Assembly (NCBI GenBank): GCA_964035545.1
Contig: CAXIUT010000230.1
Span: 1,054,001 to 1,118,000 of the forward strand
DNA from: Bugula neritina
Lineage: Eukaryota; Animalia; Bryozoa
Direction: 5' to 3'
DNA: 64,000 bases
Position numbers and translations under genes: made by a program
The notes under the pieces: model-generated
Seen by the model: only the letters and a program-made list of their open reading frames with translations
Databases searched by the model: none
Told to the model about the DNA's origin: nothing
Shown here: positions 25,701 to 33,049 of the stretch, piece by piece
How positions within the stretch are numbered: position 1 is the first letter of the stretch
Layout of the letters: each line of letters opens with the position of its first letter

Positions 25701-25975
25701 CAACATACTGAAATACACTGTAACTTATCGAAATACACTGCAACATACTGCAACATACTGCAACATACTGAAATACACTGCAACATACTGAAATACATTG
25801 CAACACATTAAAATATACTGCGACATACTGAAACATACTGCAACATGCTGAAATATACTGCAACATACTGAAATACACTATAACATATTGAAATATACTG
25901 CAACATACTGAATTACACTCTAACATACTGAAATATGCTGTAGCATACTGAAATACACTGCAACACAATGAAGTA

Positions 25976-25995
25976 CACAGTTAGTTTAAGGTCAT
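25976..25995 (+). repeat. Left terminal inverted repeat of transposon copy 1
   Basis: CACAGTTAGTTTAAGGTCAT is a 19/20 match to the reverse complement of 28533-28552. Confidence 0.95.
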
Positions 25996-26871
25996 TACTT
26001 TCCAGATTCAAGCACTGCTTTATGTTATATATAAACGGTTTCCAGGGGATAGCTCGAACAGTTTTTGTCTCACATTAATAAATTTTACATGAAAAGATAG
26101 CTCTTGCATTCCTCTTTCATATACTTTTTTAATTTTTCAATAAAAAATTTTCTGAGAAAGTTGTTGCATAATAAGTAAAATTTTACACCCTCCATGTTCC
26201 ACTGCTGTAGCACAGGGGATTTATTTTATAAAGTCTAAAAGTTAAACTTGACATTCCTTGATATGTTTTCTCTAATATACTTTCTTTGTTTTTTGAAATT
26301 CTGTTTATGCTCTTCACAATTTGGTAAAAACATACACCATTATGCAAGTTTCACTGCAATTTTCTAAATTCTTCATATGGTGGTTCTAGCTACGCTCCTG
26401 TGACTAATTATAACATCCCTAGTACGTTTGCTGCTCTGCGCGCTATCACAATAACATATAGTACCCTCTCGCACAAATTGGCAATCTATTGGATTTCTGC
26501 CAATATAATGTTCCCTGTTTTACATTAGCACTTAGCTGAATCATCTCATTATGTTACAATCTATTGACAATGCCTCAGCACAACATAATTCTTTGTTTGT
26601 TTGGCAGAGTTAATTTCAGCTAAATCACTTCACTTTGCAGTCTTGTCAGTAAAGGTCTGTCTATATTGCAGCAGGTGTACTTCCAGTTTCTCTAATTCAC
26701 ATATGATTATTTCAAGTACATTGTATTCTATAAGATCAATTTAAAGTTTAGCCCAGTGTTCAGTAGCTAAGTATTATGCATGTATGTTGTCTTACTGTTG
26801 AACAAAAGTTAAAAAACCTTTAAAATTATAGCCATATTTATTATACATGCATAGGATTTGCATAAGTTGAC

Positions 26872-26879
26872 AAAAAAAA
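26872..26879 (-). terminator. Putative Pol III oligo-T terminator (T8)
   Basis: A8 on the + strand, 13 nt downstream of the B box on the minus strand. It is conserved as T8 at 32137-32144 in copy 2. Confidence 0.4.
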
Positions 26880-26952
26880 TTGCAACATACTGGGATTGAA
26901 CCATGACCAACCAACTTCTCGCCGCCGCCTATAACCTCTGGACCACGCAGTC
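26872..26952 (-). ncRNA. Degenerate tRNA-derived / Pol III type-2 promoter cassette inside transposon copy 1
   Basis: The minus strand reads GACTGCG-TGGTCCAGAGG (A box, 26945-26935) ... GGTTCAATCC (B box, 26902-26893) ... then T8 (26879-26872). Spacing is tRNA-like, but the cloverleaf stems pair poorly, so it is not a canonical tRNA. Confidence 0.6.
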
Positions 26953-27889
26953 ATCGTTAATAAATTGCCAACTATATGAGTAACTATGAGTACATAAATA
27001 TTTCGCGCGCAAATGGGTTATAATTATTAGGCTGTCAATTCATGTTGATTAGCAGTGAACTGTTGCAATAGCCTCTGGTTACTAGCAAAGCTAATGGTTT
27101 TGAACAAATAACCCAACAGTTTAAAAATAAGTAGCTTGCGTATTACTAGCTACAAAAACAGGTCTGAAATAGACTAATAAAGCAAGGTCTTATTGTAGAG
27201 TTTGCCGATGTGCTCTAAAATAAAACTTAAACTGTATGGTATTACATGAGTATTTGTATGCGAGAGATAAATCAACAATACTGAGTTTCTGGAAAACAAC
27301 ATACTTGAAGTTAACTTTGACAATGGTGTGTTATTTTCATCATGCACTAGCACAGGTAGGGCCTATAGCATAAATCTCTAATCATATGAATCTTTATGAA
27401 GCCCACAGCTCATGTAAGGGTGGCAATGTAATTTGAAACTAAAAATTATGTTGCTGCATTGTGTCTAAGGTATATTAGAGAGCAGAATTTAATTTTACTA
27501 GCCTACCCCAACGGCATTCTACAATGCAGCTTATATGCTTGCAGTTGTAATAAGTACTGTCAATAGCAAGGTTACTATCACTGCTAGCTCTGTGCAGTAT
27601 GTAACCTCTTGAATAATTGCGCCAATTTTAAACTCTTGGAAGTTGGCCAAGTTATCATATCGCAGCCAGCCACCGGAGACAAAGCATCAGAGCTATTCAT
27701 ATAATATTATACTGATGCACTTGGTAGCAAATGTGGCTAATCTAATATAGTTCATAGTTCAACACCCTTTACTTTGGGAATACAGCCTCTTTTTTTAGGT
27801 TTACCTAACAAAGCATGAAAATATCTAAACTGATATTCTGATAATTTAGAGGTAAATTTTGAAAACTAGGTTAATTGCACTTGTTTGCA

Positions 27890-27985
27890 CAACAACAATA
27901 ATAAAATATATATTATGCAGTATAATAAAAACACACATAATACTATAATATAATATATTATAATGATAATAATATAATATTATAA
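27890..27985. repeat. AT-rich low-complexity (TAA/TAT-like) tract inside the transposon
   Basis: aacaacaataataaaatata...taataatatattataatgataataatataatattataag; mirrored at about 31035-31130 in copy 2. Confidence 0.7.
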
Positions 27986-28532
27986 GTACCATTACTGCAT
28001 TTTATAACTAGGATGGTTGCCGAAAAAATGTTTCACAAATTCTGTAATTATACATCAAAAATAGAACTAGCTAGGCAGCAGGTTAGAATAGAGTAAATTT
28101 TTAAAACATGAAATCATGATTTGACTATCGTTTTATTTAGGCCAACCAACCTAGGAATACAAGATTGGGTTTTAGCTGACAGTTTATAACATTTAGCTTT
28201 TGAGCCAGCAGCACTGGCACTTGTGAAGTATAGGCAAAGTTAGTGAAGCGAGACTAACGAGCACTCAAATACAAGGCATATTGAGACACAATAACAAGTC
28301 AGGAGCGTATAAATTGAAAAGAATGTGGAAGGGGGACTATATTTTTCAACACGCTATAACTTAAACATGAATTGGCTTTTGAAAAAAATAAAAAAGTATA
28401 TTGGAGAACATAAGTTTCTTTATCTTTTCATATTTTTTTTGTTCTTGTGACATTCAACCTGTTCGAGCTATCAGTGGAACATTGTTCATATAGAACATAA
28501 AGCACCTGGCAAAGAGCCAGAAAATGAAAAGT

Positions 28533-28552
28533 ATGACCTTAAACCAACTGTG
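28533..28552 (-). repeat. Right terminal inverted repeat of transposon copy 1
   Basis: ATGACCTTAAACCAACTGTG is the reverse complement of CACAGTTGGTTTAAGGTCAT. Confidence 0.95.
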
Positions 28553-30468
28553 TATACTGTAATACACTGAAATGAAATGCAACATACTGAATTATACTGC
28601 AACATAGTGCAACATACTGAAATACACTACAACATACTGCAACATACTGAAATACACTGTGACATACTGAATTACACTGCATCATACTGCAACATACTGA
28701 GATACACTGGAACATATTGATATACACTGCAACACATTGAAATATACTGCAACACACTGAACCATATGACAACATACCAAAATTTACTGCGACACACTGA
28801 AAAATTTTGCAACATACGAAATATACTTCAAGTGGTGCAACATTCTGAAATACAATGTGACACACTGAAATACACTGCAACATACTGCAACATACTGCAA
28901 CATACTGAAATATTGTGCGACACATTGAAATATACTGCAACGTATTGAAATATACTGTAACATACTGCAACATACTAAAATACACTGCAACATACTGAAA
29001 TACATTGCAACACATTAAAATATACTGCGACATACTGAAACATACTGCAACATGCTGAAATATACTGCAACATACTGAAATACACTATAACATATTGAAA
29101 TATACTGCAACATACTGAATTACACTCTAACATACTGAAATATGCTGTAGCATACTGAAATACACTGCAACACACTGAAGTATACTGTAATACACTGAAA
29201 TGTAATGCAACATACTGAATTATACTGCAACATAGTGCAACATACTGAAATACACTGTGACACACTGAAATACACTGAAACATAATGCAACATACTGCAA
29301 CATACTGAAATACACTGTAACATATCGAAATACACTGCAACATACTGAAATATGCTGTAGCATACTGAAATACACTGCAACACACTGAAGTATACTGTAA
29401 TACACTGAAATGTGATGCAACATACTGAATTATACTGCAACATAGTGCAACATACTGAAATACACTACAACAATCTGCAACATACTGAAATACACTGGAA
29501 CATATAGAAATACACTGCGACACATTGAAACATACTGCAACATACTGAAATACACTGGGACACATTGAAATACACTGCAAAATACTGCAACATACTGCAA
29601 CATACTGAAATACATTGCAACACATTAAAATATACTGCAACATACTGAAACATACTGCAACATACTGAAATATACTGCAACACACTGAAACATACGGCAA
29701 CATACCGAAATAAACTGCGACACGTTGAAAATTACTGCAACATACTGAAATATACTGCGACGCCTTAAAATATACTGCAACATACTGAAATAGACTGCAA
29801 GTGGTGCAACATACTGAAATACACCGTAACATATCGAAATACACTGCAACATACTGCAACATACTGAAATGCACCGGAACATAATGGAATACCCTGCAAC
29901 ACATTGAAATACACTGCAACAGACTGAAACATAAGGTAACACAATGAAGTATACTGCGACACGTTAATATATACTGCAACATACTGAAATATACTGCAAC
30001 ATACTGAAATGTAATGTAATATACAGAAATGTACTGTAACATACTGAATTATACTGCAACATAGTGCAACATACTGAAATACACTACAACAAACTGCAAC
30101 ATACTGAAATACACTGGAACATATTGAAATACATTGCGACACATTGAAACATACTGCAACATACTGAAATACACTGAGACACATTGAAATATACTGTAAC
30201 ATACTGCAACATACTAAAATACACTGCAACACATTAAAATATACTGCAACATACTGAAACATACTGCAACATACTGAAATACACTGTGACACACTGAAAT
30301 ACACTGCAACATACTGCAACATACTGCAACATACTGAATTACACTGGAACATATTGATATACACTGCAACACATTGAAATATACCGCAACACACTGAACC
30401 ATATGGCAACATACCGAAATTTACTGCGACACACTGAAAAATACTGCAACATACGAATTATACTTCAA
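28553..30468. repeat. Satellite DNA, same 10-bp family, 1916-bp spacer between the two transposon copies
   Basis: Same monomers and same orientation as the flanks. It matches approx. 3060-4875 at offset 25593 (ORF pairs 3173/28766, 3382/28975, 4172/29765). Confidence 0.98.
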
Positions 30469-30488
30469 CACAGTTGGTTTAAGGTCAT
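30469..30488 (+). repeat. Terminal inverted repeat (right-end type) of transposon copy 2
   Basis: CACAGTTGGTTTAAGGTCAT is identical to the reverse complement of 28533-28552. Confidence 0.95.
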
Positions 30489-32063
30489 ACTTTTCATTTT
30501 CTGGCTCTTTGCCAGGTGCTTTATGTTCTATATGAACAATGTTCCACTGATAGCTCGAACAGGTTGAATGTCACAGGAACAAAAAAAATATGAAAAGATA
30601 AAGAAACTTATGTTCTCCAATATACTTTTTTATTTTTTTCAAAAGCCAATTCATGTTTAAGTTATAGCTTGTTGAAAAACATAGTCCCCCTTCCACATTC
30701 TTTTCAATTTATACGCTCCTGACTTGTTATTGTGTCTCAATATGCCTTGTATTTAAGTGCTTGTTAGTCTCGCTTCACTAACTTTGCCTATACTTCACAA
30801 GTGCCAGTGCTGCTGGCTCAAAAGCTAAATGTTATAAACTGTCAGCTAAAACCCAATCTTGTATTCCTAGGTTGGTTGGCCTAAATAAAACAATAGTCAA
30901 ATCATGATTTCATGTTTTAAAAATTTACTCTATTCTAACCTGCTGCCTAGCTAGTTCTATTTTTGATGTATAATTACAAAATTTGTGATACATTTTTTTG
31001 GCAACCATGTAATTTATAAAATGCAGTAATGGTACTTATAATATTATATTATTATCATTATAATATATTATATAGTATTATGTGTGTTTTTATTATCCTG
31101 CATAATATCTAATTTATTATTGTTGTTGTGCAAACAAGTGCAATTAACCTAGTTTTCAAAATGTACCTCTAAATTATCAGAATATCAGTTTAGATATTTT
31201 CATGCTTTGTAAGGTAAACCTAAAAAAAGAGGCTGTATTCCCAAAGTAAAGGGTGTTGAACTATGAACTATATTAGATTAGCCACTCTGCTACCAAGTGC
31301 ATCAGTATAATTTTATATGAATAGCTCTGATGCTTTGTCTCCGGTGGCTGGCTGCGATATGATAACCTGGCCAACTTCCAAGAGTTTAAAATTGGCGCAA
31401 TTATTCAAGAGGTTACATACTGCACAGAGCTAGCAGTGATAGTAACCTTGCTATTGGCAGTACTTATTACAACTGCCAGCATATAAGCTGCATTGTAGAA
31501 TGCCGTTGGGGCAGGCTAGTAAAACCAAATTCTGCTCTCTAATATACCTTAGACAAAATGCAGCAACATAATTTTTAGTTTCAAATTACATTTGCCACCC
31601 TTACATGAGCTGTGGGCTTCATAAAGATTCATATGATTAGAGATTTATGCTATAGGCCCTATCTGTGCTAGTGTATGATGAAAATAACACACCATTGTCA
31701 AAGTTAACTTCAAGTATGTTGTTTTCCAGAAACTCAGTAATGTCCATTTATCTCTCGCATACAAATACTTATGTAATACCATACAGTTTAAGTTTTATTT
31801 TAGAGCACATCTGCAAACTCTACAATAAGAGCTTGCTTTACCAGTCTATTTCAGACCTGTTTTTGTAGCTAGTAATGCGCAAGCTACTTATTTTTAAACT
31901 TTTGGGTTATTTGTTCAAAACCATTAGCTTTGCTAGTAACCTGATACTATTGCAACAGTTGACTGCTATCAACATGAATTGACAGCCTAATAATTATAAC
32001 CCTTTTGCGCGCGAAATATTTATGTAATGATAGTTACTCATATAGTGCGCGTTTATTAACGAT

Positions 32064-32144
32064 GGCTGCGTGGTCTAGAGGTTAGAGGCGTCAGCGAGGA
32101 GTTAGTTGGTTAAGGTTCAACCCTGTTTTGTCACAATTTTTTTT
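32064..32144 (+). ncRNA. Degenerate tRNA-derived / Pol III type-2 promoter cassette inside transposon copy 2
   Basis: GGCTGCG-TGGTCTAGAGG (A box 32071-32081), GGTTCAACCC (B box 32114-32123) and T8 at 32137-32144. About 72 nt lie between the first G and the T-run. Confidence 0.6.
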
Positions 32145-33049
32145 GTCAACTTATGCAAATCCTACGCATGTATAATAAATATGGCTATAATTGTAAAGTT
32201 TTTTTTAACTTTTGTTCAACAGTAAGACTGCGACACCTTGAAAAATACTGCAACATACGAAATATACTGCAAGTGGTGCAACATACTGAAATACAATGTG
32301 ACACACTGGAATACACTGCAACATACTGCAACATATTGAAATATTGTGCGACACAATAAAATATACTGCAACATATTGAAATATACTGTAATATACTGCA
32401 ACATACTAAAATACACTGCAACACATTAAAATATACTGCAACATACTGAAACATACTGCAACATACTGAAATACACTGTGACACACTGAAATACACTGCA
32501 ACATACTGCAACATACTGCAACATACTAAAATACACTGCAAGACATTAAAATATACTGCAACATACTGAAACATACTGCAACATACTGAAATATACTGCA
32601 ACACACTGAAACATACGGCAACATACCGAAATAAACTGCGACACGTTGAAAATTATTTCAACATACTGAAATATACTGCGACGCCTTAAAATATACAGCA
32701 ACATACTGAAATAGACTGCAAGTGGTGCAACATACTGAAATACACTGTGACACACTGAAATACACTGCAACATACTGCAACATACTGCAACATACTGAAA
32801 TATTGTGCGACACACTGAAATACACTGCAATATACTGCAACATACTGCAACATACTGAATTACACTGGAACATATTGATATACACTGCAACACATTGAAA
32901 TATACTGCAACACACTGAACCATATGGCAACATACCGAAATTTACTGCGACACACTGAAAAATACTGCAACATACGAATTATACTTCAAGCGGTGCAACA
33001 TACTGAAATACAATGTGACACACTGAAATACACTGCAACATACTGCAAC

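Follow-up and report, generated by a model that had tools for sequence, protein, structure and literature searches.

A tRNA-derived, putative Pol III cassette carried by a young, non-coding DNA transposon of Bugula neritina

In Pack-MULE and CACTA-type capture, a fragment of a host gene lies as cargo between TIRs (terminal inverted repeats) and is amplified together with the element. tRNA-derived SINEs, e.g. those of the MIR, B2 and ID types, are likewise multiplied as mobile DNA, in their case by retroposition, and are degenerate tRNA-like sequences in which the boxes persist from one subfamily to the next and the remainder diverges. Outside the SINEs, Helenus (with tRNA-like LTRs) and Cassandra (with 5S-like LTRs) are non-autonomous LTR retrotransposons that hold a conserved Pol III promoter derived from a small-RNA gene together with a terminator (PMC10886601); in both, it is the LTRs that contain the Pol III unit, from which the transposition intermediate of the element itself is transcribed. 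With regard to the host genes themselves, the mutation rate at active tRNA loci is 7–10 times the genome average with a peak in the 20 nt upstream, the inner 5′ flank being the most divergent part (Thornlow et al. 2018, PMC6130373).

The window analysed in the present study, a 64 kb stretch of B. neritina DNA, contains two copies of a tRNA-like cassette, each situated inside a copy of a DNA transposon. As in Helenus and Cassandra, what appears to be a conserved, small-RNA-gene-derived Pol III promoter with its terminator is found in a mobile element that is not a SINE, but here there is one unit, placed internally, for which no role in DNA-mediated transposition is evident. The arrangement shares with Pack-MULE and CACTA-type capture the presence of host-derived cargo between TIRs, whereas the cargo in the window family looks like a complete Pol III unit with both promoter and terminator. 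The cassette is also similar to tRNA-derived SINEs in being degenerate, tRNA-like and multiplied by mobility, with boxes that are kept across subfamilies and a remainder that drifts; however, it spreads by cut-and-paste in a TIR element and not by retroposition, it has neither body, tail nor free copies, and its terminator follows directly on the tRNA-like part. Small-RNA-gene promoters on mobile elements are known; our search of the literature for a DNA transposon with a tRNA-like Pol III unit returned no described case.

The cassette measures 81 nt with its T-run. Copy 1, on the minus strand at positions 26872–26952 of the window, consists in this order of the leader GACTGCG, an A box TGGTCCAGAGG (26935–26945), a B box GGTTCAATCCC (26892–26902) and T8 (26872–26879). 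Copy 2, on the plus strand at 32064–32144, has the leader GGCTGCG, the A box TGGTCTAGAGG (32071–32081), the B box GGTTCAACCCT (32114–32124) and T8 (32137–32144). Two units, each composed of a 7-nt leader, the two boxes at tRNA-like spacing and T8, had been predicted at these positions and are present there, and the predicted unit length of about 72–73 nt agrees with our reading, as the T-run starts at position 74 and leaves a unit of 73 nt. In cassette numbering the A box occupies positions 8–18 and the B box 51–61, a spacing of 43 nt that matches the 43–44 nt found in the real tRNA genes of this genome. When 562 kb of fetched loci were searched on both strands for the box pair TRGYNNARNGG and GGTTCRANNC with 30–60 nt between them, the only matches were those at 59 loci of the cassette and 21 in real tRNA genes, and because the pair is confined to these two settings, a chance occurrence is excluded. 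As far as sequence can tell, the cassette therefore has everything that a type-2 Pol III unit requires. It lies at reference positions 1614–1694 of an element of approximately 2577 nt, about 950 nt from one end, and has a GC content of 52% compared with 33% in the element, on the cassette strand of which there are only two runs of seven or more T. We also observed a TATA-like CATATA motif at −26 to −21 (32038–32043 in copy 2), approximately 23 nt upstream of cassette position 1, which changes little despite its hypervariable surroundings and could be either a TFIIIB/TBP site or merely AT-rich sequence.

The carrier had been predicted to be a non-coding cut-and-paste element, and its TIRs, its 2-bp TSD (target site duplication), its approximately 220 copies and a search of the element that found no ORF of at least 60 amino acids all bear this out. 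The left copy in the window begins with CACAGTTAGTTTAAGGTCAT... and finishes with ...ATGACCTTAAACCAACTGTG; the element ends read CACAGTT(A/G)GTTTAAGGTCA... and lie inside imperfect inverted repeats of approximately 130 bp. The terminal 19-mer of the TIRs, with the termini CACAGTTRGTTTAAGGTCA, has 440 exact matches in the 216 Mb genome, 219 forward and 221 reverse, and as these are mostly paired, with approximately 2.55 kb between partners, the genome should hold approximately 220 elements. A 2-bp TSD was found in both of the copies for which two flanks were seen, TA/TA for the window copy and CA/CA for locus L002, and excision of the left copy together with one TA restores the register of the surrounding satellite. 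The 3′ flanks of 58 copies are mutually unrelated and start with varied dinucleotides, and hence insertion is not TA-specific; a strict requirement for TA, of the Tc1/mariner type, is ruled out by the CA/CA duplication at L002 and by the fact that only 15 of the 58 flanks begin with TA. The carrier is therefore a young, non-autonomous and non-coding cut-and-paste TIR transposon of 2.58 kb, the copies of which are 95–99.9% identical and lie mostly in unique DNA, across all large contigs. Approximately five or six of the 60 copies sampled (L025, L064, L071, L080 and the two window copies) are situated in the same 10-nt satellite. Three copies (L002, L085 and L087) have internal deletions of approximately 30–350 bp near reference positions 1370–1560, just upstream of the cassette.

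The whole of the window is a single array of a 10/20-nt satellite (unit TGCAACATACTGAAATATAC), which keeps one orientation throughout and is broken only twice, at about 25976–28552 and 30469–32228, by two stretches that are mutually inverted copies across approximately 1.75 kb. The left stretch is a complete, non-coding copy of the TIR element on the minus strand (2577 bp, ‘L’ subfamily), with the 2-bp duplication TA at 25974–25975 and 28553–28554; its imperfect TIR of approximately 130 bp at 28421–28552, the equivalent of which in the right copy is 30469–30600, pairs with 25976–26099 and is 73% complementary to it. The right stretch is a truncated plus-strand copy of 1.76 kb (‘R’ subfamily), in which the last approximately 810 bp are absent and satellite follows. 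The 1.9 kb between the two copies (28555–30468) is again the 10/20-nt satellite, plus strand, in the orientation of the outer array. When compared with copies elsewhere, the left copy is 99.6–99.9% identical to five copies on other contigs, whereas the right copy is only 95.6% identical to reference positions 85–1777 of the element but 97–99% identical to approximately 30 R-type copies, homology with which ends at 32228.

The orientation of the satellite, the mutual identity of 95.6% and the existence of closer relatives elsewhere show that these are two independent insertions of one family, in opposite orientation and from different subfamilies. A single element of 5.4 kb with TIRs of 1.75 kb is ruled out, as the satellite between the arms is oriented like that outside, each arm is of a different subfamily (95.6% mutual identity as against 98–99.9% with copies elsewhere) and full-length copies in other places measure 2.58 kb. 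The original prediction did not mention opposite orientations or separate element copies; the cassette does lie within a DNA transposon, and its two copies came with separate insertions of different subfamilies on opposite strands. The right copy breaks off directly into satellite at position 32228 of the window, about 1777 in the numbering of the full element, perhaps through a deletion or through unequal exchange in the satellite; the approximately 810 bp that it lacks include the second TIR, so that its excision is no longer possible.

The relationship of the cassette to tRNA was examined with several tools. A search against the Rfam tRNA model found nothing at the RF00005 gathering score and, even at E≤10, nothing on 5.6 kb or on stretches of 111–131 nt, so that the covariance-model similarity proposed as a check of the original prediction did not appear. 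ARAGORN at default settings called no tRNA in the window or in the 60 copies; at a 90% threshold, 10 of its 11 matches within 190 kb fell on the cassette. As read from the alignment, the acceptor stem is absent, positions 1–7 (GACTGCG) not being complementary to positions 65–71. In the D, anticodon and T arms, 86% of cells are paired compared with 30–59% in slid controls. No stem covariation beyond that of shuffles was found in the cassette alignment, the minimum free energy of the cassette was no better than that of shuffles (z=−0.1 to +1.7), and the RNAalifold consensus was weak and not a cloverleaf (−9.4 kcal/mol). In addition, local alignment to the 35 distinct tRNAs of the genome yielded no parent tRNA, the scores being no better than those of shuffles, and a metagenome scan with the cassette core gave no match (0).

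With its boxes at positions 8–18 and 51–61, the spacing of 43 nt, the three arms and a T-run after position 73, the cassette is laid out like a eukaryotic tRNA gene or pseudogene, but it differs from one in that the acceptor stem is absent, that neither Rfam nor ARAGORN at default settings calls it, and that it occurs only inside a transposon. The persistence of the D, anticodon and T arms makes the cassette, judged by its sequence, clearly tRNA-derived; since both programs fail to call it, the acceptor stem is lost and the fold is no better than that of shuffles, it is not a functional tRNA gene. Among the other loci, a small contig (G000:C214, locus L032, about 1400–2600) has approximately 12 tRNA genes of bacterial or organellar type arranged head to tail within 1.2 kb, and it could come from an organelle, a symbiont or a contaminant and not from nuclear DNA.

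To follow variation across the family, we aligned 60 of the approximately 220 copies, both window copies included, chosen as the nearest relatives of the two window cassettes. One large cassette subfamily, TGGTCC...TTAGAGG (TGGTCCAGAGGTTAGAGGCG, with C13 and G22), is under-sampled in this alignment to the point of being almost absent; it stands between the two types seen in the window and is probably the most abundant cassette type genome-wide. Nucleotide diversity among the 60 copies is 0.10 in the cassette and 0.023 overall. Parsimony steps per site, counted on a tree of the remaining element sequence and open to inflation by recombination, came to 0.21 in the background (the rest of the element), 0.65 in the flank from −60 to −21, 2.05 from −20 to −1, 0.89 in cassette positions 1–73, 0.27 in the A box, 0.45 in the B box, 0.125 in the T-run and 0.15 in the 60 nt past it. 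In these 60 copies the cassette and its 5′ flank thus change at 4–10 times the rate of the remaining element, and in a tree-free count (alleles minus 1) the enrichment is still 3–4-fold. The hypervariable patch runs from −40 to +73 of the cassette, at 32024–32136 on the plus strand for copy 2 and at 26880–26992 on the minus strand for copy 1, and the subfamily consensus sequences diverge by 17% within it compared with 2–3% elsewhere.

Within the cassette, only 8 of 65 steps fall in the boxes, where approximately 20 would be expected, and permutation supports this sparing with P=0.003–0.009 (0.008 with random sites and 0.003 with blocks). Taken together, the boxes have 0.36 steps per site against the background of 0.21, so that their conservation shows only by contrast with the hot sequence around them. 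All 60 copies retain the A box, 58 of 60 the B box and all 60 a T-run of at least six, as T6 to T9 from position 74. The expectation that boxes and T-run would be more conserved than neighbouring bases is therefore upheld across the 60 copies, in the sense that they are spared within a fast-changing stretch. CpG decay alone does not account for the patch, as non-CpG sites are hot too (π=0.109 in the patch compared with 0.017 elsewhere). Private mutations within subfamilies are approximately 2-fold enriched in the patch, and, as this enrichment is so limited, most of the excess arose along the lineages of source copies.

Comparison with active tRNA loci (PMC6130373) shows the same peak in the 20 nt upstream, at approximately 10 times the background, and the same drop beyond the terminator. 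There are, however, differences: the body of a real gene is conserved by selection, whereas only the boxes and the T-run are spared in the cassette, the 3′ flank of which is not elevated. Nor was a strand asymmetry of substitutions clear in our data, with raw counts of 20 C>T and 21 G>A and, per site, a weak excess of C>T.

Our preferred reading, to which we assign a probability of roughly 0.6, is that the cassette is the relic of a tRNA gene, amplified as transposon cargo, that would still be recognized by Pol III at least in source copies. A complete tRNA gene, together with its T-run terminator, would have become internal cargo of the 2.58 kb non-autonomous cut-and-paste transposon and would have been multiplied with it to approximately 220 copies, two of which would have landed independently, in opposite orientations, in the satellite array of the window. 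The relic could no longer make a tRNA, its acceptor stem having been lost and its fold being unstable, but would retain a consensus A box and B box at their native spacing of 43 nt, with a T6–T9 terminator, in essentially every copy. We infer that TFIIIC, TFIIIB and Pol III still recognize the cassette, at least in the source copies, and the product would be an unstructured RNA of approximately 75–80 nt. On this view, the fast change of the 20 nt upstream and of the interior outside the boxes would be due to transcription-associated mutagenesis, which would also account for the background rate right after the T-run and for the slowness of boxes and terminator; only these last would be spared because the product is unconstrained. 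With moderate confidence, then, the pattern of variation suggests germline transcription of the cassette, present or recent, in the source copies at least. The suggestion in the original prediction that the cargo is a small-RNA gene fares unevenly in this light: the retention of boxes and T-run amid the most variable sequence of the element argues against an inert relic, whereas the cassette has no covariance-model similarity, no acceptor stem and no stable fold.

Alternatively, the cassette might be an inert captured tRNA pseudogene, in which boxes and T-run survive through youth and the hot patch reflects intrinsic mutability or gene conversion between subfamilies, a reading that we regard as unlikely without being negligible. 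The identity of 95–99.9% between copies does make the family young, the 52% GC cassette contains ten CpG sites, another 12 lie in the 60 nt before it, and CpG sites are approximately 5-fold more variable throughout the element. Mosaic haplotypes also exist (e.g. L086, L017 and L085), and both the missing strand asymmetry and the merely 2-fold enrichment within subfamilies are in keeping with such a history. However, the non-CpG sites of the cassette are 6-fold more variable than non-CpG sites elsewhere, and the hottest stretch, from −18 to −6, is partly an AT-only run (ATTTTATT); moreover, intrinsic mutability or conversion sits poorly with variability that is at background immediately past the T-run and with boxes that are spared inside the patch (P=0.003–0.009).

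Another possible origin is a tRNA-derived SINE head, which the original prediction had offered as a decayed and captured one, or a Helenus-type solo LTR, inserted into the ancestor of the element. The degenerate cloverleaf without an acceptor stem is what SINE heads display, Helenus is a published element type (PMC10886601), and a TG...CA unit can be drawn from −42 to +72 with four of five flanking bases in agreement (ATTTA and ATTTT, from the consensus), a weak match in AT-rich DNA. Against this, the 18-nt cassette core TGCGTGGTCYAGAGGTTA has 160 exact matches in the genome, none of which has a non-element flank at the three upstream positions tested, so the cassette is not a free SINE, and no copy with its own TSD outside the transposon, another check that had been proposed, was found among these 160 cores. 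A 24-nt core with up to three mismatches gave 227 matches compared with approximately 220 elements, and BLAST candidates numbered 211 with the cassette alone and 234 with cassette plus flanks. In addition, the T8 at +74 would end a SINE transcript ahead of body and tail; a T-run at the terminator position of a tRNA gene would be intolerable for a SINE, which disfavours the SINE head. We therefore consider an insertion of either type very unlikely, and an origin by capture of a complete tRNA gene, terminator included, is the simpler one.

tDNAs and TFIIIC sites can act as barriers, but that the cassette is a host-selected portable TFIIIC site, forming a chromatin barrier or insulator in satellite heterochromatin, is an analogy we hold to be highly improbable, since besides that general knowledge it has only the intact A and B boxes and the approximately five or six of 60 sampled copies in satellite in its favour, whereas most copies lie in unique DNA over all large contigs, there is no sign of host-level selection, and the copies are young and presumably polymorphic.

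Returning to the reading of a tRNA-gene relic still recognized by Pol III, we tentatively raise the possibility, itself less than even, that this DNA transposon family keeps a working Pol III/TFIIIC unit because selection acts on the element itself. TFIIIC-bound copies might stay accessible and be mobilized more, or the small RNA might serve the element; approximately 220 portable TFIIIC sites, some of them in satellite heterochromatin, would be a side effect, and the turnover outside boxes and terminator would be the footprint of germline Pol III transcription, the product itself being unselected. If the units are transcribed or bound by TFIIIC, they would amount to a natural experiment with hundreds of near-identical Pol III units that carry no constraint on a product and are placed at random in euchromatin and satellite DNA. 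Transcription-associated mutagenesis could then be measured directly, without selection on a gene body, as could the effect of a TFIIIC site on nearby chromatin, and DNA transposons would join SINEs, Cassandra and Helenus as carriers of small-RNA-gene promoters. If they are silent, the cassette would be no more than a captured pseudogene of the usual sort, its mutational hot spot left unexplained.

Finally, a few inverted TIR pairs are 3.3–5.4 kb apart instead of 2.55 kb, at 14737903–14741224, 15458877–15462748 and 15479779–15483633 on contig C1 and at 7190792–7196231 and 9302131–9306445 on contig C2. These pairs could represent longer relatives of the element or copies that bear insertions, and the autonomous partner might be traced through one of them.
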